Of a stretch of DNA of 64,000 bases, positions 2,631 to 57,000 are shown piece after piece. Under the pieces are notes generated by a model. It did not search any database, was not told the origin of the DNA, and was given only the letters and a program-made list of their open reading frames with translations. A program made the translations under genes and the position numbers. This stretch comes from Octopus bimaculoides. Taxonomy: Eukaryota. Each line of letters starts with the position of its first letter. Positions within the stretch are counted from its first letter, which is position 1. The stretch spans positions 32,187,944-32,251,943 of the forward strand of contig NC_068983.1 in assembly GCF_001194135.2 (NCBI RefSeq), given 5' to 3'.

Positions 2631-3516
2631 TAATTCATAAACAAACTTGCAGGTTAGATATTTGACCGAAATGATTGAATGACGTTGGTTGCTGCTTGAA
2701 GCTATTCGCACGAACACCACGCAGCTTTACATGAGGGGAGATAACCTTAAAAACATCACTGGCATAATGACCCTCCCCGACGCAAAAATTTTAAGTTTCA
2801 TTTTCAAATGTGGATTCCTTGAAAAACATTTTCACTTATGATTTCTTTGAAAAATAACATTTTCACTTTGCTCAGGACAGTCAAAATAAAACTAGTGACA
2901 AACCACTGCAATAATTTACAAAACAGATTTCTTTCTCATCAGTGTTTAATCCTTCTCAGAACACTTAACTGTTTACAAAGGTTGCTTAGATACTGATGCT
3001 GCAAGTTGCTCAGTTATTAAAACATAAAATAACCTTGTCGCGTGACTGTAGGTTGCTAACTTGTATGGATAATAAATGAATAAATAATATTCTAATTTTA
3101 GAACAAGGCCAACAATTTTGAAGGGGTGGTTAGATGAGTCGATTAAACACTCCAGTACTTAACTGGTTCTGTATCTTATCGATCCTGAAAGAATGAAAAG
3201 CAAAGTTGACCTCAAAAGAGTTTGAACCTAGAATAAAGAGCCGGAAGGAATGTTAGTAAACATTATGTCTGACACGCTAACGATCCTTCCAGCTCGTTTT
3301 CTTAGTAAATGGATAAATAATAGCATTTGAGTAAAAGTGGGTGTTCATTAACGAAACAAGGACGGGAAACAGATTCTAATGATCATGAGATATAGTTTTC
3401 TTCACAAAATGTATGACAGTTGTTTTGTTAAGACTTCAATGATGCATATTGGGGATGTCAAATATACGGCTCACGGGCCAGACCTTGTTCAAATTTGTTT
3501 TTAAAAAAATTATATT

Positions 3517-4650: not shown

Positions 4651-7600
4651 TTCATACACAACTGAATTCAAGGTCAATCTGTGCCAAGAAGCTCCAGTGT
4701 GTACTTTAGCTTTGTTACTATGACAATAGTCCGGATACTTATTGACCAGACCACGTAGTTAAATAGTTCTCTTCATTGCTCGTACACCACTCTCAATACT
4801 TCCCACCACCCTCCAGTTTGTAAATGTATTTTCAGAAATTGTGAACAATTCTCATAGCAAATTTTCTTTGATCTCTTCTATCATCTGAAACTGGCAACCT
4901 TCCAGAGTGGTCTAACTTTAGGAACAAAAAAATATCTGCAAGCCAATTCTAGAGATGAGGCCAGCTTGGGGATGAGTAATCTTATCCTTTACCAGTTACA
5001 GACAAGAAGAGGCAAAGGTTGTGATGCTGCATCCAGGTTGTGTTTGTCTCGGACTTTTTCCTTCATCTTACCTCTAGAGATTCAAGTAGTTCTTTACAGA
5101 TCATCTGACCATGAGGAACAAACTTATAATGAATGATGCCATACTAATAAGAAAAAAAAAAGGCAATCAACATCAGCTTCCTATCTGAGTGACAATGACT
5201 TCTTTTTTGCTTTGAGATTGAAGCCATATACACATATATTCATGTCACCTGTTGATTTTAGAAAGCTGTCATCGGCATTCGAATGATGAAATAGCTCCTG
5301 ATTGACTATAATTCAATTCTCTTTTTGTTTATCTGTCAGCAGATGCAGCACAAATTTTGTAGCAGTATGAAACATCTTCAATTTTTTTTTTAACCCTTTA
5401 GCATCTACACCAGCTACATCTGGCCTAAATATTCTACCTCTTACACTTACCCTACAATGTCATTCCAAAAATAAACAATCAAATTATCAAAATCTTGAAG
5501 CCACAAGATAATACATGATAAATTCAAAACAATGAATAAACAAGCATTACAGTTGAGGGTGTAATCTGAATGCTAAAGGGTTAAACTCATATAAAAAAAC
5601 AATTTTACAGTTTCTATGCAGTTTTAGTGAAACCCTCTAAATACAGGAAGTAAATGTAAAGTAAATATAAATTCCACTCAATACCTGAAGGTTTTTTTTT
5701 TTAAAAAAAGACTTACTTAGCAACATTTTCATGGTATTAAACAGATGGTATTTGCATCCTGTCCCTTGCAGGGTAAAATGCAAACAATCTTCTTAGATAA
5801 TGTAGTACCAATTCTTTCCAGCAAAGTGGAACTAATACAATATAGGAAAAAATGTATTGCCCAGAAGCATGAAATAATAATGGATCTCAACTCATGGTCT
5901 ATGAGTAGATAATCTAATATGTTATCCCACTTGAATCATCCTGCCTCTACAAGCTACAGGATACCATGATTACAAAGTTACTATAAGGATAATGTCCTAC
6001 ACTATTGGTTTAAGTTCACTTTCTGTTTAGTTCATGTCAGTGATATTGAAACAACAAAAAAAAGAACTAGTAATGTATGGGAAGTTTTTATACTGACTAT
6101 AATAGCATTCACCTATCCAAAAAATGGGGAAAAAATCATTTAATTTAACTTTCACCATTTATTGTTTAATGTTCAAATAACATCAAAATGAAATAACAAG
6201 TAAAACCTACGACACCATAATGAGAACAAATAAAATATCGTATTTACTCATAAAAAAAGCAGGAAATTTAATTAAAAACATCAAGGTCAAAACTGGGTGG
6301 CAGTAGCATTACAGTCAAATGGTAAAAAAAAATGCTGAGAGAATAAAATATATCACTGACTTTTTTAGTATAAAGAGGGGCCTGCATCATATTTGAGATT
6401 GCATTGTACATGAATATATATGGCACTCCTTGTGGACAGATTAACACACTGACATACATACATCAACTGGTTTTACCAACTCTGACACATGCTCTGATGT
6501 AGCGATAATTTTTCTGAAAAATGATATTGGGATGTCATTTTATATTCTCATCATCATCATCATCGTTTAACATTCTCCTTCCATGCTGGTATGGGTTGGA
6601 TGGTATGACAGCTGGCCAGGCAGGAGCCTGCACCATGCTTCTGTATCAGTTTTGGCATGGTTTTTACGACTGGATGCCCTTCCTAACACCAACATGTCCA
6701 TAGAGTGGGCTGAGTGCTTTTTACGTGGCACTCACACAGGCGGGGTCAGTTTTGACATGATTTTTACAGTTGGATGCCCTTCCAAATGCCAACCACTTTA
6801 CAGTGTGGACTGAGTGCTTTTTAAGTGGCACCTGCACTGGCAGGGTCACCAAGTAACTTTGTGAGACAAGGAATCTTTGAGAGGGCAGGGGCATTGGAGG
6901 TGATCTTGTGTCTTATGATGAAAGGTTATAGCAAGACAGAGACAAAAACAGGTGTCTTGTAGGAGTTACCCAGCCAGAGAGAGGGAGAGAGAAAAAGAGT
7001 TAAGAAAAGGGCAGAAACAGTTGTGTTGCTGAAGCGGAGGGACATGGTTACTTAGAGAGAGAGGGGAAATTAACAAGGAGATACATGGTTATCTATTCAG
7101 GGGTAAGAGTAAGGAGAGAGTGATCAAAAATGAGGGTAGAAATAGGTTTGTTGCTGTAGAGATGCATGATTACTCAGCCAGAGGGAAGAGGAAGGGAAAG
7201 AGAGAGAGCGAGTAGGAGAGGGATAGTGGTAAGTGCCAAGATATACTCACAAGGAGTGGGGATCAGGGCATAGACAGGATGGTAGAGTAAGGAAGAGAGA
7301 GATGAATAGTAGTAGGGTATTGCCAAGAAGTTGCGAATAGGGAGTGGTGGTAGGGAATGCTGTGACTGGTAATAATCTGGGTATATAGAGGGGGAGGGGA
7401 TGGGGGAAGCAACATAGTGCGGACTGGATTGAGGAGTGAGAGATAATAATATTGTATGAAGAAGAAATGTGAGAAAGCGAAGAGAAACAGTTTGGGAAAG
7501 GATGGGGGGTGCTGTAGTTTGGTTTGCTGGGGTAGTGTATGTAAAAATTTTTAGCTACGTGTGGGTGGAACATGTTTCTAGAACTCAGGCTTGCTGATGT

Positions 7601-7689: not shown

Positions 7690-8200
7690 TCCCATATCTT
7701 CCTGGACCTTCCTCTTCCACAGGTGCCATCCACTATCAGTGACCAGCATTTCTTTATATAGTTGGCTTCATTCATACGCATCATGTCCAAACCAACGTAG
7801 TCTCCTCTCTTGTATACAGCATTTAATTCCTCTTATGCTTGACTTTTCTCTGAACACATTTGCACTTTGTCGTTCATGCACATTGTTGATGTTACGCATC
7901 CAGCAGAGCATACTGCCTTAATTCCTCTCTAGTCTACACATGCCCCCTACATTCAGAGGCCAGGTCTCACTACCATGGAGTATAGCCGTTCATATACAAG
8001 CATCATACAATCTACCTTTCACTCTGAAAGACGGTCCTTTTGTGTTGCCAACAGAGGTAATAGCTCTCTGAACTTTCTCCATCCTATTTGTATTCTAGAG
8101 ACAATACTTTCAGAGCATCCATCCCCATTGCTGATTTGGTCATTTACGTAACAGAAACTATCTACTACCTCAAGAGAGGCTCTTGGACATTTGAGAGTCT
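7690..8200 (-). mobile_element. RTE-clade LINE 3' fragment
   Basis: Reverse complement is similar to 13940-14570 and 38090-38890; multiple stops. Confidence 0.65.
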
Positions 8201-8752: not shown

Positions 8753-11059
8753 GAGCCTGGTTTGGCTCCAAGTCTTACTAGCTTCTGTCAAACTATCCAA
8801 CCCATGCCAACATGGAAAACAGATATTAAATGATGATCTCCCTCAAATCTCATTTAACAGGGAAATAAAAATTTACAAAGAAATGACAAAACACAGCACA
8901 AAACATTACCTTTCCCCTACCTGTTTTTGTTTATGTGCCACAAAATCTTTTAAATTTTATTATTTATGATGATGATGATGATAATATAGAGTTTTCATTA
9001 GTTTTGTTCCAACACCATTTGAGGAACAAGTACCAACACTCTCAAAGAACCACATGTAATAATCAATGGCGAAATGTTAAGTGTATGTATAGTAGATCAT
9101 TTTTAACACAGATCTGGCAATGGACAAATATTATCTTGGTGACACGAAGGGTATCCAGCTGCTCCATATAAACTTTTTAACCCATCCAAGCATGGAAAAG
9201 TGGATATTAAAACAAAGTTGAAGTTAATAGGCACAAATCCACAAAAGTTGGTAGAAGGGTGTAGTGATTTAATTAAACCTATACTTAATTGGTATTTATT
9301 TTATCAGCTTCAAGAAGCATAAAATGTGAAGTCAGCCTCAAGGGGATTTGAACTCCACTCTTTTATTATAATATTAAAATATTTACACAATTTACCATAC
9401 ATTGCACATACATTATGTTAAGTAGTTTCAAAACAATAACAAAACACTGCACATATTCACTGTACTCAAGGCTTGAATGATTTTGCAGTGAAAACAATAA
9501 CAAAACTACTGAATAGCTGTCAAATAATTTCAGTTATTGGTCTTACAAAACATGATACAACATGATAGGTATTGCACTTGAAGCTAAAACAGTTCATATC
9601 TTCAGTTTTAATAGAATGTTATATAGAATATGAAGGTGTCACATGACCTAAAATTTGCAAGTTTGATTCCTGGATTGAGAGGTGCGCTGCGTCAATGAGT
9701 AAAGCATTTCATTTCATGTTTGCTTCAGTTAATTCAGTTGAAAATCAGAACCAGCTAAGTGCTAGTACAGCACTTTCTTCCTCCAGCAGTGATATCCTTG
9801 ATGTTTTCCTGTGTTAACATGTTAAGGATAAAAGTGTGCCTATGTCTGCTTCCAACTACACAAACATCTAAAACAATGAGCAAAACCATGGTACCTGGTT
9901 GTACTTACTTGTGTGTGTGACAGTTATGTTTTTTCTCAACTAGAAATCAAAACTATAAAAAGCAAGATTAAAATGATTTCACTTAAATAATAGCAATATT
10001 ACAGCAGATGTAACAAAGTTTACATTTTTTTGTGTGTATGGCTGTGTGTGTGTGAGAGAGAGAGAGAGAGTGTGTGTACATGTGCGAATGTTAAATATGT
10101 ACATGTAAGCATTAAACCCATATCTTAATTTCAAGCTGTCTTTTAAGAGTAGTTACCTATATATATATTAATCTTAACATTTTCTGGTAAGCACTCATGC
10201 ACTGTATATGCATATGTTATATATGTATATATGTGCCTTAATGTTTATCTAAAATACTGGCATCTCTGAAAAAAGTTTATTTACATCTGAACTCCAGAAA
10301 AATATTTCTTAAATGGATTTCTGATGTTGCTTTAAAAAATGCAATGTTTATGCATTAGTTAAAGCAATAAATTGGGTATTTTTTAAAGCCAGAAGCCAAG
10401 AAATAAACAGTATTATTATGTGGATGCTTCGAGGAAATTTGTTACCTTATTCAAAACCAGAGCAAGTGTACTTAGATATGAATGAACATAAAAACAAGGA
10501 GCTGAGTTTAAATAGTTATGTAAAATCAAAACACACACACACATAATATATATACTATGTAGAGAGGGTTAAAATCAAAGCTGTTTCTTCTTGAAGCACA
10601 ACTGCTATTTCAGTATTACAAATCCATATATAAATGTTATATTTGTGTGAGGTATGCATAAGAATTGAAAATACTGGAAAATATTTTCTGCAAAGTAATA
10701 AAATCAAAATGGGAGATTGCAAATAATACAAAAAATTTTCCAATTTCTTGCTTTGATATATATCATGTGATCACATGACTGACCAGATTATCAGATGTTG
10801 TTACACATTACTGATTACAACATGCTCTGCATTGTTTTAGACTTCGAATGATGTTTTAGACCCAGCTAGCTAGGTGAGCAAGCCAACATTACCCCCTGAT
10901 TGAAAGGGGGATGGAAGTAACATGAAATGAAGTGGTTTGCTCAAGAACACAACACACTACCTGGTTTGGAAATCGAACTTATGATCTAGCAATCAGGAGT
11001 GAACTGCCTAATCACTAGGCTATGCACCTTCACTATCTATCTATCTATCTATCTATCTA

Positions 11060-44880: not shown

Positions 44881-44957
44881 TATAAAACGTGCCCCGTCCG
44901 TAATCCACCTCTTAGTTGCCATACTGTTTTAACAGGCGGCATATTGTACATTCTCAG
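44881..44957 (+). promoter_or_regulatory. RPLP0: TATA box + pyrimidine (TCT/TOP-like) start and non-coding first exon of the RPLP0 locus
   Basis: TATAAAA at 44881, cctCTTAG about 30 nt downstream, and donor cag|GTGAG at 44958. This is typical ribosomal-protein promoter architecture. Confidence 0.55.
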
Positions 44958-45270
44958 GTGAGAGCATTTTTTAAATTTAAGTCCATTCGATCTTTTTTTC
45001 TGTTAAAGAAGTACAACTTGTATTCATCATTTGCTTTTAACTGCAAAATTGTCGATGATTTAATCATGGGTTAGCGGATGATATTAGATTATGATTACAC
45101 GAGGGCAGCCTAGTTGGTATGAATGGATATAAGCATGGGATGCTTCTACTTAACGAAAGTTCTCCAAATTTTTAGTACTTTATAAATCTTTCCAAATTGT
45201 CTATATATATTATATCTAGGACAATTTTCTCTCTCTCTCTCTTTATATATATATATATATATATATATAG

Positions 45271-45302
<32 letters not shown>

Positions 45303-45376
45303 CATCTTTCTCTCTCTATGTATATATATATATATATATATATATCTTTTAGACTTAGTCTGTTGGCTAAAATGGC

Positions 45377-45613
45377 TACGACGTGATTTACAAGATCATT
45401 GCTGAAATAGTCTTGTAAAGTGGCAAACGGGAGCTGACTTTACTGTACTCTTCGGAGTATAGTTTTTTTGTGCAGTGAAATCCCATTCCACCATGTCGAA
45501 CATAAATACTTGTCCCCTGGTTTGCCAGCTGAGGACTTGAACAGGGTATATTCCATAACTTCTCGTAGTCTCTTTGACTATTACCGGGGAGTGAGACCAT
45601 ACTCGGTACAGTT
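45377..45613 (+). ncRNA. SNORA73: U17/SNORA73 (snR30) H/ACA processing snoRNA, copy 1
   Basis: 5' ACGTG...AAGTGGC as in vertebrate U17, H box ACATAA, m1 ATATTCC (45548), m2 AGACCAT (45594), ACA at 45608 plus 3 nt. The 3' hairpin parallels U17 (ATATTCC...AGTC...GAC...GGGGAG...ACCAT). Confidence 0.85.
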
Positions 45614-46862
45614 CCATCTATAAATACTACTTTCTTGGGTAGAAAGCCTACAGGATTCTCTGGGATATTTATTTTTTCATCAAGACTTGTTTGTTAATAG
45701 TTCATTTCTTCTGCTGTTATTGTAATTTGATAAATTGGATCGTTCCTCTAAGAACTAAGTAAAGAAAATATTTTTTTAAAAATCGAATATAAAGATTAAT
45801 ATATTCTCGATAAAGTAGATTAAAATTCAACAATGACTAGGTAAAAGTGTGATGGATTCCGGGCCACGTGCGTTATGGCGGGTGGCTGCTTACGTGGGTT
45901 ATTTCGTCGGAAATTGTTTTTCAAACCGTATGCTATTTATTTTAAGGCTAATTATAGTGTATACTCTAGGTATGTAGAGAAAGTGTATTTGTACACTTAA
46001 TTAATTTTTCTAGAAATTCTATTTAAGCCATGTGAATGAACTCTTTAAGAGCAGCTAAATATATTCCTCCCCCCAATCATGAACCATTCACTTGTATTAA
46101 GCATGGACAATAAAACGCATATAGTATATGTATCTATTCATTCTTGCCGGTATCATGTATATATTTACGCTTCGATATTAAAATTGCAAAGTGCAACCGA
46201 GACACCTGATTGTGCGGGTTAAATTTTGAATGGACAGGGATAACGTAGCTCTTCCCGATCGAGTAATTTGAATTCGCAAGAAGCCTCACTTAGTCAACGA
46301 TTTTCTACGCTTCTCTTAATCTCCTTGAAGCTGTACATTTCTAAATTCGAGTCGTGATGGAGTGGAACAAAAAGGTGAGTGTTTTAAGATGCAAATAGCA
46401 GCTATTCGAACAACTGCATTGTACTGTTGATGGCACTTCTTGAGAGTTTAGTTAATTTAAATGGCCTCAATCTTTTGGCGGGTTTTCAGAATATCCCTTC
46501 ATACACGAGGTGAAATTTCTCGATGCAAAAGCTTGAAAAAAATTCCATTTTAAGTGGAACAGCTATCTTAATAGTTAAATTGTTTTTTTCCGGATATCAA
46601 TTTTCGGTAAGTATAGTGTAATTTTTTATGCCTTCAGAAGGTGTATAGCTGATCATTTACCAAAGAAAAGAAACAGCATTGTAAGAAGTTTTAGGTTTTA
46701 GTATAGTTTTGGAGCTACGAAACTGCATTAGGCCAAAAGTATATTAAACGCAACTTCTTTTTCCGTTTAAGGTTTTTTTTTTTCTAACTACAATAATGGT
46801 TTAAAAAATTTCTTTTCAGATTTATCTTTAAATTGCTGTGGTGCAGTCCCTGATCCACCGAG

Positions 46863-49800
46863 ATGGTCAAGGAAGATAAATCAACCTGGAAAGCCAACTA
46901 TTTCATCAAGATCATTGTAAGTATAATTGTTTAATGTAAGCGTTTAACTTTACCGACGTGATTTATAGGATCATTGCTAAAATATCTTGTAAGTGGCAAA
47001 CGGGAGCTGACTTTACGTGCAGTGAAATCCCATTCCACCATGTCGGAAATAAATCTTGTCCCCTGGCTGCTTAAGTCGGGTGAGGACTTGAACAAAGTAT
47101 ATTCCATAACTTCTCATAGTCTCTTTGACTATTACTGGGGAGTGAGACCATACTCGGTACAGTTTTATCAAGTCTTGTCGGTTTATGACTATAGATGATC
47201 AGTATTTTAAAGTCTTCATTTTCTTTCAGCAATTGCTTAATGAATATCCAAAATGCTTCATCGTCAATGCAGACAATGTTGGCTCCAGGCAGATGCAGAC
47301 CATCCGTATGTCACTCAGGGGCTATGCAGGTGAGAAAATTTTAAATAGCTTCATTTTGTTTTTTGTTCGAGTCTCAATCACGTTTTCGGTTCAATTTCAT
47401 GTGTCCTATGACGTGGCGTGATAGTTCGTGTCACAAATAAAAATAGTGTTGTTCGTTTCCAATCTTTCATTGAAACCCATCTTGTTGGTCACTGAGAAAT
47501 ATTTTTGGAAACTAGTGTGGCTTGGTGACGGGAAGAATGTTAATAATTCTCAACGAATTTCATTTAATCTAAAAGGAAAAATGAACATTAAATTGGATAT
47601 AAATTTTGAGGTGTGATGATGAAGTAACTGCTATTAAGCGTTCGGCTCTTTGGCACTAGTTACCGAAAGGTTGAACCCACTAGTGTTTGCTGGACGCTAT
47701 GACAAAATGTAGCCAAGTATGGCTGTCTGAACACCCCTGAATACTAAGTATTTCAGCATGCTGTTGATATTACTGTACTGACTAATTTTCTTTTAATCAC
47801 ATTCAGTTGTCCTCATGGGTAAAAACACAATGATGAGAAAGGCCATAAGAGGTCATTTGGAGCACAATGCAGCCCTTGAAAGGTAAGTTCTAAATCTTTT
47901 CCACTGAAATGAGGTATGTATATTGCCAGTTTAGATTCAAATGTTGCTTGGGTTATTCTTGATCAGAAGCAATCTTGGACTGGTATAGTAATCGGTCACT
48001 TTTTGCCTTGTAGTATCTTTCATACTGGACACTACAACTTCCCCATAAGTGATACAATTCTTCTTTTTTTTAATTTTTTTTTCCCCTTTTGTTATATAGG
48101 GACGTGTAATTAAACAATGGTATCTCTGATCACAGAAAATAAATATTTATGCAACTATTGAAAAATATAACATTTAGTGAAGTGTTTTAAATGCAGATGC
48201 TGGCTTCACTCGTTTTTTTTTCTATTATAGCATTGGACCAGTCAAAGCTTTCAGACTGGAGAAGCTAGCCATGGTGTTTCATGCCTGTAAATGTCACTTA
48301 TGCATGCAGTGTCCATTCCCAATCTCTTGTGAAAATTCATCTTAGCTATGGGGAAATAACTGAAGACTGGTGACAGGCAGGGTGGCTGTAGAAAATCCAC
48401 GTGTAATTTTGTTCTACCCATTCCTCAATGGGAAAGTGGATGACTGTCAATCTTGCTCACCCCCCACACCTAACAACCAATAAAAAAAAAAGCTGGATAT
48501 AAGTACTGAGGTCAATTTTGTTTGACTAAGCCCTGTGTTGCCCTAGCATGGCTGCAGTTCTAAGATGAGTCTTTAAGAGGGTGATGTGTATAGTAATATA
48601 AAATGAGCACCTATACAAGATTTGCTTGATAATAGTGTTTAGTAATTGCCTTAATATTTAGGTTATTAAACAAAAACTTGTCTGTTGTAGGTTGCTACCA
48701 CACATTAAGAACAATGTTGGTTTTGTGTTCACTAAGAATGACTTGGCTGATATCAGGGATAGATTGCTGAATAACAAGGTTAGTTGATTTTCATTCCATC
48801 TACATATGGAGCTTTAATTTTGATTTTTTTTTTCTCCCCTCGCTACTGACAAATTGATATTTATTTATAGGTGAAAGCTCCTGCTCGTGCTGGTGCTGTT
48901 GCTCCTTGTGATGTGTTGATACCTGCTCAAAATACAGCTCTTGGTCCTGAAAAGACTTCTTTCTTCCAAGCTTTGTCTATCCCAACAAAAATCTCCAGGG
49001 GTACTATTGAAATCTTGAATGATGTCCGTTTGATAAAGGAAGCTGATAAAGTTGGTGCTTCCGAGGCTACATTGCTGAACATGTTGAACATCTCACCATT
49101 TTCATATGGTTTGGTCATTGAGCAAGGTAGGTTGGGCATTATTTTATTTTGCAGCCCTCAAGAATGATGAAAAAAAAGAATGACTTTCGCTCTACTGAAA
49201 GCTATGTAGATTCTTGTCCACTGACTTAAGGGCTATATTTATTTATTAGTGTCCTGTCTGGTTTATATTTAATTGTTATATTTAATGTTTTTAAAATTTT
49301 CTATACTAGTGTATGACTCTGGAACTGTTTTTGCACCTGGTGTATTGGACATTACTGATGATGATATCCGTAAGAAGTTCATGTCTGTAAGTACTTTTCT
49401 CATTTATAAACTCCTTGCAGAATGTTCAAATCTGCCTTCATCATGATATTCAAGTAATATATTTTCTTTGCAGGGTGTGACAAATGTTGCCAGCTTGTCT
49501 CTGGCTATTGGGTATCCAACTTTGGCTTCTATACCACATCTTCTTGTCAATGGCTTCAAAAATCTGGTTGCTATATCTTTGGAAACAGATATTGAATTTG
49601 AAGAAGCAAAAGAGGTATATTACATTTGAGTTTTTATATTTTTTTTTCACTTGGTAAATCTGTCAATATTACATGTTTTTATTGGATGATAATATGAAAA
49701 TGATTTGTATTTTCAGATCAAAGAGTTGTTATCAGATCCTGAAAAGATGGCAGCTGCTCTGGCAGCAAGTGCTGCTACTACTGCTGCTGCAGCTCCATCT

Positions 49801-49887
49801 ACCCCTGCAGCAGAAGAAAAGAAGGAAGAAAAAGTGGAGTCTGAAGAAGAGTCTGACGAGGATATGGGTCTTGGCTTGTTTGATTAA
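46863..49887 (+). CDS. RPLP0: 60S acidic ribosomal protein P0 (uL10), 320 aa, 8 coding exons
   Basis: Exons 46863-46916, 47230-47329, 47807-47882, 48691-48778, 48871-49126, 49310-49386, 49474-49614 and 49717-49887; all GT-AG and phase-consistent (963 nt). Reads [28 protein letters not shown]...RGTIEI...[24 protein letters not shown]. Confidence 0.98.
46952..47164 (+). ncRNA. SNORA73: U17/SNORA73 (snR30) H/ACA processing snoRNA, copy 2
   Basis: Paralog of 45377-45613. H box AAATAA, m1 ATATTCC (47099), m2 AGACCAT, ACA at 47159; ends 65 nt upstream of the 3' splice site. Confidence 0.88.
47610..47735 (+). ncRNA. SNORD22: U22/SNORD22 C/D processing snoRNA
   Basis: Terminal stem ggtgt/acacc, C box ATGATGA (47616), D box CTGA (47727), 126 nt. 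Internal AAAGGTTGAACCCACTAG matches vertebrate U22 AAAGGTGAACCCACTGG inside a long stem, and a short hairpin precedes TGTCTGA as in U22. Confidence 0.82.
47924..48059 (+). ncRNA. Canonical two-hairpin H/ACA snoRNA
   Basis: Hairpin 1 tgccagttta/tggactggta, H box ATAGTA (47985), hairpin 2 tcactt/aagtga and ttgtagt/actacaa, ACA (48054) plus 3 nt. Pocket strands tttgcc and cttccc are complementary to LSU GGGAAG-UC-GGCAA. Confidence 0.78.
49153..49234 (+). ncRNA. C/D snoRNA, SNORD59/snR54-like
   Basis: Stem agccctcaag/cttaagggct, C box ATGATGA (49164), D' CTGA (49195), D CTGA (49221). Guide ATGACTTTCGCTCT compares with human SNORD59 ATGACTTTCGTTCT; about 80 nt upstream of the 3' splice site. Confidence 0.8.
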
Positions 49888-54016: not shown

Positions 54017-57000
54017 CATACATGTATGCATACATACATTTATAAATTCGAGTTTGTTTGAGACCTGCATTCTAAATATTCAGGTGATTCAAGCCGAGCT
54101 TTAGAGGAAGGTGCAAAGAACCATGTATAGCATAAAAGAATATCTTACTCAACTTTTAAAAATTTTCTTTGAAAATATCCATACACAATACTGTATTAAT
54201 GTGTATAAGTATTGTAAATGAAATCTTTTTTTTTTCTCTAAGTTTTTCCAATGCCTATTGCTGTTCTCAATACACATCCCATTACTTTCTACCAAAATCT
54301 CAATTATATTTTAAATAAATTAAAACACTTGGGCAATCTTGCTCATTATGACATGGTAATGAAAGAATTATGGGCAGAAAGATTAGCATTTAGTTGGATA
54401 GTCCATATTTATAGAGTAGGCAATTTCTTTGCATTATTTTGCAAAAAAAAAAAAGGTAGAAATGGATGCAAATTTGTTATATAACAGGCAGAATTCTTAT
54501 TCTGAAAAATACAATATTTCAGCCCAAGTATTTTATTGATCCTGGAAGGTTGCAGGGCAAAGTAAACCCCAGTAAGCCATTCTACTTGGAGTGGCAAAAG
54601 TGATATAATAGAAATTAATTATTATATACTTGGCACATAAAAAGCATGTGCCTTACTGGCACATGAATGAAACATTCGAGCTAGGTCGTTGCCAGTGCCA
54701 CTGGACTGACTCCTGTGCAGGTGGCATGTAAAAGACACCATTAGAGTGTGACCTTTGCTAGTACTGCCTGACTGGCCCTTGTGCTGGTGGTACATAAAAG
54801 CACCCACTACACTCGGAGTGGTTGGCGTTAGGAAGGGCATCCAGCTGTAGAAACTGTCAGATCAGATTGGAGCCTGGTGCAGCCATCTGGTTTGTCAGTC
54901 TTCAGTCAAATCGTCCAGGCCATGCTAGCATGGAAAGCAAACATTAAACGATGATGAATCATATATCTCTGCTCTTCTAGAATTGCACTGTGCTGGAACA
55001 GCAACTTCTAGATATAATTCAAATATAACCTATCAGATCATTAACATGGAAGAATGTGATTCAGCCTTCGTTTAGTATGCTTGCTTGGAACAAACTACTA
55101 ACCCTGTGAAGTTGAACTGAGTACAAATAAATGAAAGACTCATCAGTTATGTAGTACTGTGACTGCTTGGTATCACACTATTTCCATATTGTACCTGCTT
55201 ACAATTAAATGTCATGACATTAAAAACACTCCTGTTAAGAGAGTAAACTCCTGACCCTTCAGCTCGCAGTTGCTATGCAATGAAACCATAGTTATAGTAT
55301 TCAGGAAAGACCTCTTACCTCAAAGAAATGCCTTTTCAGCTGTTGCTTGTTTAAAATGTCTGAGTATTTTGTTAATACATAATAATCAGAGCCAGAGGTG
55401 ATTATTCACAGGGTATTTTTTTTTACCAGTTCTCATGAACAATAATGATAGCTAAAATATTTATCAATGTGCTCAAAGAAACATCATACCACCAATAAGG
55501 TAGCTGAACGTTAAATTAATTCTAATGTTGTTTTTGATTTACCGGGCGCCGTGCTTAAAGAGCGACAGCTGCCACCGGTTGTTAAAAATTGCGTCTCCGA
55601 AATCTCTTGATTGTGATTCCGCCCAGACGCTCGCAAATCGGCAACTGGGTGTCACTGACGACAAAGACCCTTTTAATAAGTTAACATTTCAGTAACTGAT
55701 ATATATCGTTACTATAATAACTTTAAAGTGATATTGCAATGCAAGTTCTGCTTAAAATTTAAATAAGATCTCAATACAAGCGAATATAATTACAATTTTC
55801 GATATTTACAAACAATATCTAATAGTTTTCTGCTAGTAGTTAATTATTTTGTTTTAAAATAAGCTAGTAAAATATCAAAAAAATTCCTTGCCATGTACTT
55901 ATTCCCAGTCAATCTTTTCTAAAATGTATCCTATGTAAGGGAGGTAATTCATAGCAAATAGGTTCGCTCTTTAGAGATGGCATACTTTCATTGAATGTCA
56001 GTAATAATTGAATTAATTAAATAAAAATAAATAAATCGCTTCTACTAACACATGACTCGTGACTCATACTTGATAATTTAGTTTATATAAAGGTATTCTA
56101 CGTTTGTGAAAAGAAAATCCCGTTTCACTATCTTAAATTTGTGCGTGTTTTCGAGCGACCATTAGCTTTGATTTTTACCAGTTCTTTCTTTCAACCACTA
56201 ATTTTCAGCTACGCCTTTTCTACTCTAGGCAGAAGGCCCGAAATTTTTGGGGAGATAAGATCGATCTCAGTACTTAACTGGTACTTAATTTATCGACCCC
56301 GAAAGGATGGAAGGCAAAATCGACCTCGCCGGAATTTGAACTCAGAACATAAAGACAGACGAAATACCGCTAAGCATTTCGCCCGGCAACAGCTCTCTCT
56401 GTCTGCCGAATATTACTTGTGTTAAAGTTTGTTGACTGTACATACGTAAGTTATGATTAAAAAAAAATTAAATTGGCATCCCTGCAGGATAGAATGTGAA
56501 ATTATCGAGTACTTCCAAAATAATAATTTCTTCGGATCCATGTTTCACGCATCGTAGATTATGAATCTGCAATTTTGGGTGGGGTGTGTAGACCCCCTTT
56601 CCGTAATTTTTCAGTTTTTACTTTCTTTTGAATTATTTGTTTAAATTATACGTAACAAAATTATACATAAGCATAAGTCCGAAAAAAAAAATCAAAGCTG
56701 AAAATTTACGGAAAGTGGAGTGGATTTTGCTCCTCTTTCGAGAAAACGCGGAGTAGATAAAACAGGGGACAACTGATGAAGGGAATGTTCTTTATGTTCC
56801 CTTTCTCGTTTCTCTATTTGTTTCTTTCGTTGTTCGAAAAAAGTTAGTTTTCTATGTTTTTGTTTTTATGTTCACGTTTTTTGACGTCCTTGTACCCATA
56901 TATGCATGTATATATACATATATAACTAGGTATGTACATATATGTATGTATACATGCATATATTTATATATTATTTATATTATTATATATATGTATATAT

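Follow-up and report, generated by a model that had tools for sequence, protein, structure and literature searches.

A 64-kb stretch of octopus genomic DNA (64,000 nucleotides of contig NC_068983.1, hereafter the window) contains the ribosomal protein P0 gene, RPLP0, and within the second intron of this gene lies a sequence, at 47610-47735, that resembles U22, also called SNORD22, a small nucleolar RNA (snoRNA) of the box C/D class. All features of the window described below are on the plus strand unless marked otherwise. The RPLP0 coding region was delimited by tblastn and splice-site reading and extends over 8 coding exons from 46863 to 49887. Its spliced product of 320 amino acids shows 98% identity to a transcript-derived protein from a public sequencing-run assembly, 90% identity to the P0 protein of Argonauta hians and 91% identity to that of Octopus bimaculoides. 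The host intron (47330-47806, GTGAGA...ATTCAG) falls between codons 51 and 52, and the U22-like RNA is the only snoRNA in it, an intron-encoded arrangement of one snoRNA per intron. The 3' end of the snoRNA is 71 nt ahead of the 3' splice site, and branch-point-like sequences (CTGAC at 47778 and CTAAT at 47782) are found approximately 45-50 nt downstream of this end. Such a distance to the branch point is reportedly favourable for the processing of intronic C/D snoRNAs, as work by Hirose and Steitz from 2001 is said to have found.

The RNA is 126 nt long and has the layout GGUGU-GA-UGAUGA ... CUGA-ACACC, in which GGTGT (47610-47614) pairs with ACACC (47731-47735) to form a 5-bp terminal stem. 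Box C (A-TGATGA, or A-UGAUGA in the RNA, 47616-47622) and box D (CTGA, or CUGA in the RNA, 47727-47730) were both read from the sequence; a second TGATGA, starting at 47614, overlaps box C, and the alignment with Argonauta prefers the version at 47616-47622. Boxes C and D are joined by the terminal stem, which is the kink-turn scaffold found in U22. A hairpin of 5 bp, AGCCA-AGUA-UGGCU (47711-47724, with AGCCA at 47711-47715 and TGGCT at 47720-47724), stops two bases short of box D and fills the position usually taken by the D-box guide. The boxes, the terminal stem, the length of 126 nt and this pre-D hairpin were all found where an initial annotation of the DNA had placed them.

Between the boxes lies a two-tier stem, the outer part of which pairs AGCGTTCGGC (47637-47646) with GCTGGACGCT (47689-47698) over 10 bp, including two G-U pairs, and the inner part of which pairs GGCACTAG (47652-47659) with CTAGTGTT (47680-47687) over 8 bp. 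The inner stem encloses a mini-hairpin of 3 bp, ACC-GAAA-GGT (47662-47671), capped by the GNRA tetraloop GAAA, and this is followed by the single-stranded conserved element TGAACCCA / UGAACCCA (47672-47679), in which GAACCC is invariant. The motif AAAGGTTGAACCCACT covers 47666-47681, and the central conserved sequence of U22, AAAGGUGAACCCACUG, is represented here by AAAGGUUGAACCCACUA at 47666-47682. The initial annotation had described AAAGG and the motif adjoining it as an unpaired loop; the motif is present and (U)GAACCCA is single-stranded, but AAAGG is paired as part of the GNRA mini-hairpin. An unconstrained minimum-free-energy fold of the single sequence recovered every one of these helices, at -38.5 kcal/mol (z = -2.3). 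The outer stem, the inner stem, the GNRA mini-hairpin and the pre-D hairpin are all structures shared with U22.

At the gathering thresholds of Rfam, nothing was called at 47610-47735. When matches were reported by E-value, as in the covariance-model search against SNORD22 that had been proposed at the outset, SNORD22 (RF00099) was the best family and no other family scored better, its alignment spanning the whole model and scoring 29.5 bits (E = 1.9e-4 in 351 nt and 0.0032 in 6 kb), and the runner-up family scored 17 bits. The Rfam SNORD22 model was trained on vertebrates and its structure line holds a 4-bp terminal stem only, and its cut-off is operational rather than biological. Since this model is nearly structureless, the boxes and the central motif supply the whole score, and rewritten stems lower it. 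A search of the window on both strands with a covariance model that had zero octopod sequences in its training set (R3) gave a single significant match, at 47609-47736 (79.6 bits, E = 1.6e-17, the E-values of the purpose-built models of the R1, R2 and R3 type being rough, with a shortened calibration), the next match scoring 13 bits. The orthologue in Argonauta scored 80.5 bits with R3.

The relationship was also examined from the vertebrate side. A pattern scan of metagenome contigs, using the C box, TGAACCCACT, GTCTGA and spacing limits, gave 60 loci. Three loci (L020, L022 and L046) pass the Rfam SNORD22 threshold with 70-76 bits and adjoin SNORD29, SNORD30 and SNORD31, a neighbourhood that is the vertebrate UHG/SNHG1 arrangement. 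A second model, R2, which was built from 14 RPLP0-hosted invertebrate sequences only, recovers all three of these vertebrate U22 genes, with scores of 49.7-51.6 bits (E approximately 2-5e-8), and decoy loci that match only the pattern of C box, motif and D box score below 22 bits under the same model. Because R2 finds vertebrate U22 and R3 finds the octopus locus, homology with U22 is supported in both directions despite the Rfam cut-off not being reached, and the original assignment of the sequence as a U22/SNORD22 homologue is upheld by the two models. We conclude that 47610-47735 is very probably a real, divergent U22 orthologue in octopod RPLP0, known here from its sequence, with a role in 18S ribosomal RNA (rRNA) maturation that would follow by homology.

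An alignment of 33 sequences, ranging from vertebrates to molluscs, was built with R3 and analysed for covariation. In this alignment 90.8% of the cells are in standard pairs, compared with 59.3% after shuffling and 30.5-48.3% when the partner is slid by 1-3 columns. Cells changed on both sides numbered 339, compared with 109 +/- 10 in the shuffled and 66-85 in the slid controls, and the covariation score was 0.81, compared with 0.24 and 0.08-0.17, respectively. Double-sided changes occur in pairs of all five helices. The terminal stem (helix 1) covaries across the 33 homologues; the outer stem (helix 2) has double-sided changes in 10/10 pairs, with 87% of its cells paired, and the inner stem (helix 3) covaries in 7/8 pairs, with 96% of its cells paired and an invariant closing G-C pair. 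All pairs also covary in the mini-hairpin (helix 4, 4/4, 100% of cells paired) and in the pre-D hairpin (helix 5, 4/4, 90% of cells paired). The loop of the mini-hairpin is GAAA, GUAA, GCGA or GCAA in most homologues, and a few have loops of 5 nt. The suggestion in the initial annotation that the stems had been rewired by compensatory changes is thus borne out by covariation in five of five helices. The single-sequence fold and a comparison of the stems by hand agree with the 33-sequence alignment. MAFFT followed by RNAalifold on 9 sequences recovered the outer stem, the terminal stem and the pre-D hairpin but not the inner stem, since the 5' strand of the latter was off-register by one column in the octopods and in the nemertean Tubulanus; realignment with the covariance model cured this register error.

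Invariance across the 33 homologues is confined to these columns: UGA.G in box C, G.CUGA in box D, the G-C pair that closes the inner stem, and GAACCC with the (A)C after it. GAACCC is unchanged in 33/33 homologues, including those of vertebrates, and it is single-stranded and adjoins the GNRA mini-hairpin, with GAACCC(A)C at the 3' side of an asymmetric junction that links a covarying stem to this hairpin. Degenerate D'-like boxes (CUGA, CUUA, CUAA or CCGA) and C'-like boxes are found on either side of the outer stem, so that the conserved domain can be read as an expanded D'-C' linker.

In Argonauta hians, the orthologue is located in the identical RPLP0 intron, with a C-G to A-U change in the inner stem, a C-G to U-A change in the outer stem and one pair more in the mini-hairpin. 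The RNA is therefore kept in another cephalopod with compensatory changes, and the concern raised initially, that the motif might be absent from other cephalopods, is answered. Copies inside RPLP0 were also found in the nemertean Tubulanus polymorphus (1 copy), the damselflies Ischnura elegans and Hetaerina americana (2 copies each), the wasp Diachasmimorpha longicaudata (1 copy), the thrips Thrips palmi (2 copies, 68.5 and 57.9 bits, outside the training set of model R1), the hemichordate Ptychodera flava (1 copy, 77.4 bits) and the annelid Paralvinella palmiformis (2 copies, 73.5 and 59.7 bits). The Ptychodera and Paralvinella copies were outside training and were not subject to selection by sequence pattern; they were reached via a protein search with the RPLP0 exons of another animal locus, L067, in which the best match was a transcript-derived protein at 84%. 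The RPLP0 intron used varies by lineage, and the octopods and Ptychodera have their copies in a common intron, after codon approximately 50. No U22-like copy was present in the RPLP0 loci of the moth Plutella and the fish Albula when these were searched with filters off. As RPLP0-hosted copies occur in Mollusca, Nemertea, Annelida, Insecta and Hemichordata, RPLP0 is read as the ancestral bilaterian host.

Several other loci were noted during this comparison. L067, which is animal DNA of approximately 64% GC, has U22-like copies at 1443-1560 and 2858-2989 (+), in RPLP0 introns after codons 77 and 191, with mini-hairpins capped by GCGA. A tight clade of U22-like sequences from several metagenome samples (L064, L034, L025, L065, L010 and L062) scores 83-94 bits with R3 and 56-69 bits with R2, for which the clade was outside training. 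Two copies are found in L062, at 9414-9539 (-) and 8015-8139 (-), 1.4 kb apart. No RPLP0 exons were found beside the members of this clade, and the open reading frame listing of L062 is without clear coding exons; the host of these RNAs may be non-coding. Candidates at L054 (993-1102) and L057 (122-230 and 1371-1478) were excluded as uncertain, being 108-110 nt long, scoring 31-36 bits and lacking the two-tier stem. In them UGAACCCACUG is placed in the loop of one small hairpin; these RNAs may represent either a reduced form of U22 or something unrelated. The Tubulanus RPLP0 locus (L002) has further sub-threshold C/D candidates in and beside the gene, including one at 5494-5649, among them a SNORD15-like sequence at 52.8 bits, two SNORD29-like sequences, a snoR38-like and a snoU61-like sequence. 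In Albula goreensis (L190, 3001-7748), the RPLP0 model is 472 amino acids long and the exons for residues approximately 118-265 are present twice, an apparent doubling that is either a local tandem duplication or an artefact of assembly or annotation.

Other snoRNAs are found in and near the octopus RPLP0 gene. Two copies of the H/ACA snoRNA U17/SNORA73 pass the Rfam threshold, one upstream of the ATG exon (45378-45613) and the other in RPLP0 intron 1 (46953-47164), the two scoring 74.6 and 93.2 bits. An equivalent pair is present in Argonauta (L001, 8227-8458 and 10095-10321). Octopod RPLP0 is thus a joint host of U17 and U22, both of which have been tied to 18S processing in the literature. 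RPLP0 intron 5 contains a SNORD59-like box C/D guide snoRNA (49156-49231, 23.8 bits, sub-threshold), whose element CTTTCGCTCT / CUUUCGCUCU, directly 5' of the D' box CTGA, complements AGAGCGAAAG of 18S rRNA in at least 18 contigs of ribosomal DNA (rDNA); Argonauta has two SNORD59-like copies (L001, 12373-12449 and 12954-13026). Further upstream, at 44881-44958 (+), a TATA-like tatataaaa precedes a pyrimidine-rich start, CTCTTAGTTGCC, after which comes a donor, cag/gtgaga, and there is an acceptor at 46819, ahead of the ATG exon of RPLP0. The sequence at 44881-44958 resembles an RPLP0 first exon that is non-coding; if so, the upstream SNORA73 would be in an intron of the 5' untranslated region. 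A long (TA)n and (CT)n microsatellite at 45200-45350, just 5' of the first SNORA73, gives weak palindromic matches to 'mir-3149' on both strands. Outside the gene, a U11 minor-spliceosome small nuclear RNA (snRNA) gene of full model length is located at 55542-55675 (-), with 94.5 bits against a threshold of 39.

The U22-like RNA would be transcribed within the RPLP0 pre-mRNA, and splicing together with exonucleolytic trimming would free it from intron 2. Boxes C and D and the terminal stem would then form a kink-turn that binds Snu13, Nop56, Nop58 and fibrillarin, and these core proteins of the small nucleolar ribonucleoprotein (snoRNP) would stabilise the RNA and route it to the nucleolus. 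These biogenesis steps are those established for box C/D snoRNAs. The working part is predicted to lie between the D'-like and C'-like boxes and to consist of the 10-bp outer stem, the 7-8-bp inner stem, the GNRA mini-hairpin and the (U)GAACCCA strand, in which GAACCC may be where pre-rRNA or a processing protein makes contact. By homology, the RNA would act as a non-modifying assembly or processing factor in 18S rRNA maturation, and this is most likely its role in the octopus. Xenopus oocytes depleted of U22 are cited as failing to produce 18S rRNA (Tycowski et al. 1994, cited in PMC7277114 and PMC2943600). U22 is described as needed in Xenopus by a mechanism called unknown (PMC7277114, PMC2943600, PMC4914119), and a 2020 review still lists the mechanism as unknown, as it has been since 1994 (PMC7277114).

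Several points weigh against the identification of this RNA as a U22 that acts in 18S maturation. Its SNORD22 score of 29.5 bits is below the curated gathering cut-off of 50. Many of the training sequences are metagenome contigs that were chosen by their pattern of C box, motif and D box, and the alignment used for covariation was fitted to the structure of the model, so that the pairing is somewhat inflated. The host gene is RPLP0, as opposed to UHG/SNHG1 in vertebrates. Lastly, human SNORD22 was reported to be without significant binding to core snoRNP proteins in chimeric eCLIP (enhanced crosslinking and immunoprecipitation), and a splicing role with the U5 small nuclear ribonucleoprotein (snRNP) was proposed for it (10.64898/2026.04.02.716167).

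Owing to this 2026 proposal, the ancestral function of U22 may lie outside 18S processing, wholly or in part, and the octopus RNA might be a true U22 homologue whose conserved job is pre-mRNA splicing with the U5 snRNP proteins PRPF8 and EFTUD2. The same preprint describes eCLIP signal of PRPF8 and EFTUD2 at the SNORD22 5' end, enrichment by RNA immunoprecipitation and exon-skipping upon knock-down, and calls SNORD22 an orphan that is weakly bound by core proteins (10.64898/2026.04.02.716167). The proposed action of human SNORD22 on the U5 snRNP is via an AG-rich tract near box C' (10.64898/2026.04.02.716167), but this tract is unconserved in the invertebrate RNAs, where the octopod has AUGACAAAAUGU and the odonates ACUGUGGAUAAG in its place, and a U5-linked role is therefore unlikely to be ancestral. 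The parts that are conserved are instead the kink-turn and the GAACCC domain, and the octopod host, a ribosomal-protein gene that also carries two U17/SNORA73 copies, fits ribosome biogenesis. On balance we consider splicing unlikely as the conserved function.

The RNA is very unlikely to be a common box C/D guide for methylation, lineage-specific or from another family, whose likeness to U22 is accidental. Such a reading would be compatible with the sub-threshold SNORD22 score, with a weak snoZ157 match of 17 bits that is confined to boxes C and D and the terminal stem, and with the presence of true guides in RPLP0 introns, such as the SNORD59-like RNA at 49156-49231. The guide class was nevertheless rejected, as the RNA has no antisense element of 10-21 nt that ends 1-2 nt ahead of box D or D' and has a complement in conserved rRNA; in front of box D lies a covarying hairpin, and the sequence of 8-14 nt that separates box C from the D'-like box is unconserved in the 33 homologues. 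Among 120 eukaryotic rDNA contigs, which come from other species and cover the 3' part of 28S partly, no 10-mer of the U22-like RNA was complementary to 10 or more, unlike the SNORD59-like neighbour, which served as a positive control and showed the expected rRNA complement in an equivalent search. Within the rDNA covered, the RNA at 47610-47735 carries no rRNA methylation-guide element. Moreover, its central domain and GAACCC are common to the vertebrate U22 genes that pass the Rfam threshold, and the models match both ways. SnoRNA retrocopies are common in animal genomes, but a decaying or non-functional copy is hardly credible here, given that the sequence is single in the window, has intact boxes, is kept in the orthologous Argonauta intron with compensatory stem changes, and lies at a distance from the 3' splice site and branch-point-like sequences that favours intronic processing.

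With the locus read as a U22 orthologue, the invariant GAACCC directs attention to a possible partner in rRNA. The initial annotation had suggested looking for complementarity to the pre-rRNA, and in 18S rRNA a match of 7 nt was found, GAACCCA complementing UGGGUUC (Rfam small-subunit (SSU) rRNA model positions approximately 1104-1116), but it is only 7 bp long and not statistically significant, the chance of a 7-mer complement in rRNA being approximately 0.1-0.35. The site is in central 18S, just 5' of the conserved GGGGGGAGUAUGG hairpin, and in the Rfam eukaryotic SSU model it covers an internal loop, one helix's 3' strand and the beginning of a long-range helix. Among 47 long rDNA contigs, which had been selected by the UGGGUUC site itself, there was no other recurrent perfect complement of 7-8 nt. 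Thrips (GAACCCU) and Argonauta (GAACCCC) are each one pair short, which also counts against this partner. We regard 18S UGGGUUC as a lead only, and as a candidate partner of GAACCCA.

In the course of the rDNA searches, at least 120 contigs (L068-L187) in bacterial and archaeal species-representative genomes were seen to contain an exact 24-nt segment of eukaryotic 18S. One of these, L101, scores 428 bits against the eukaryotic SSU model. These contigs are eukaryotic rDNA contamination in prokaryotic assemblies and metagenome-assembled genomes.

U22 could be a pan-bilaterian processing snoRNA, with RPLP0 as its ancestral host, a move to UHG/SNHG1 in vertebrates, GAACCC(A)C as its functional site and 18S UGGGUUC as the candidate partner of that site; we put this composite picture forward tentatively, as plausible rather than probable. 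A 2010 paper states that invertebrate homologues had not been found and described U22 as present 'only in vertebrates' (PMC2943600), and the 2026 preprint mentions vertebrate conservation only (10.64898/2026.04.02.716167). A literature search of partial coverage found no earlier report of an invertebrate or RPLP0-hosted U22. The octopus RNA is an added member of a known family, and the wider pattern is the bilaterian spread, the RPLP0 host, GAACCC as the sole invariant internal sequence, and the GNRA mini-hairpin. Rfam-based annotation misses invertebrate U22 because the current model is without internal structure. U22 is one of few snoRNAs that serve rRNA processing instead of modification, and the protostome and hemichordate homologues widen its comparison from vertebrates to Bilateria. 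Since all has changed except the kink-turn, the covarying helices and GAACCC, the search for the functional site is narrowed to a few nucleotides that can be mutated. If RPLP0 was indeed the ancestral host, an 18S-linked snoRNA would have stayed in a ribosomal-protein gene through most of animal evolution, hopping between introns, before passing to a non-coding host in vertebrates.

Compared with vertebrate U22/SNORD22 (RF00099), the octopus RNA is alike in its length of approximately 125 nt, its C/D boxes with a short terminal stem and its intron-encoded origin. It also shares the two-tier central stem that encloses a GNRA mini-hairpin and then (U)GAACCCACU, the hairpin abutting box D, and the lack of an rRNA antisense guide. 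It differs in that its host is the protein-coding RPLP0, whereas the vertebrate host UHG/SNHG1 is non-coding, and in that its C box is the canonical UGAUGA, whereas the Rfam consensus is UGAAGA. The octopus RNA has an extra U before GAACCC and is without the AG-rich tract that mammals have 3' of the central domain, and its stems are fully rewritten by compensatory changes, with a score below the Rfam cut-off. U3, U8, U13 and, in part, U14 are similar in being C/D snoRNPs for the folding or cleavage of pre-rRNA through conserved single strands outside the guide positions (PMC7277114, PMC2943600). However, these RNAs have mapped pre-rRNA pairing sites, whereas U22 has only the 7-nt candidate, and U3, U8 and U13 are, unlike U22, independently transcribed and capped. 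U17/SNORA73 (snR30) belongs to the H/ACA class and has another structure and an unrelated sequence, but it is co-hosted with the U22-like RNA in the RPLP0 of the octopod and of Argonauta, and is likewise listed as needed for 18S processing (PMC7277114, PMC2943600).

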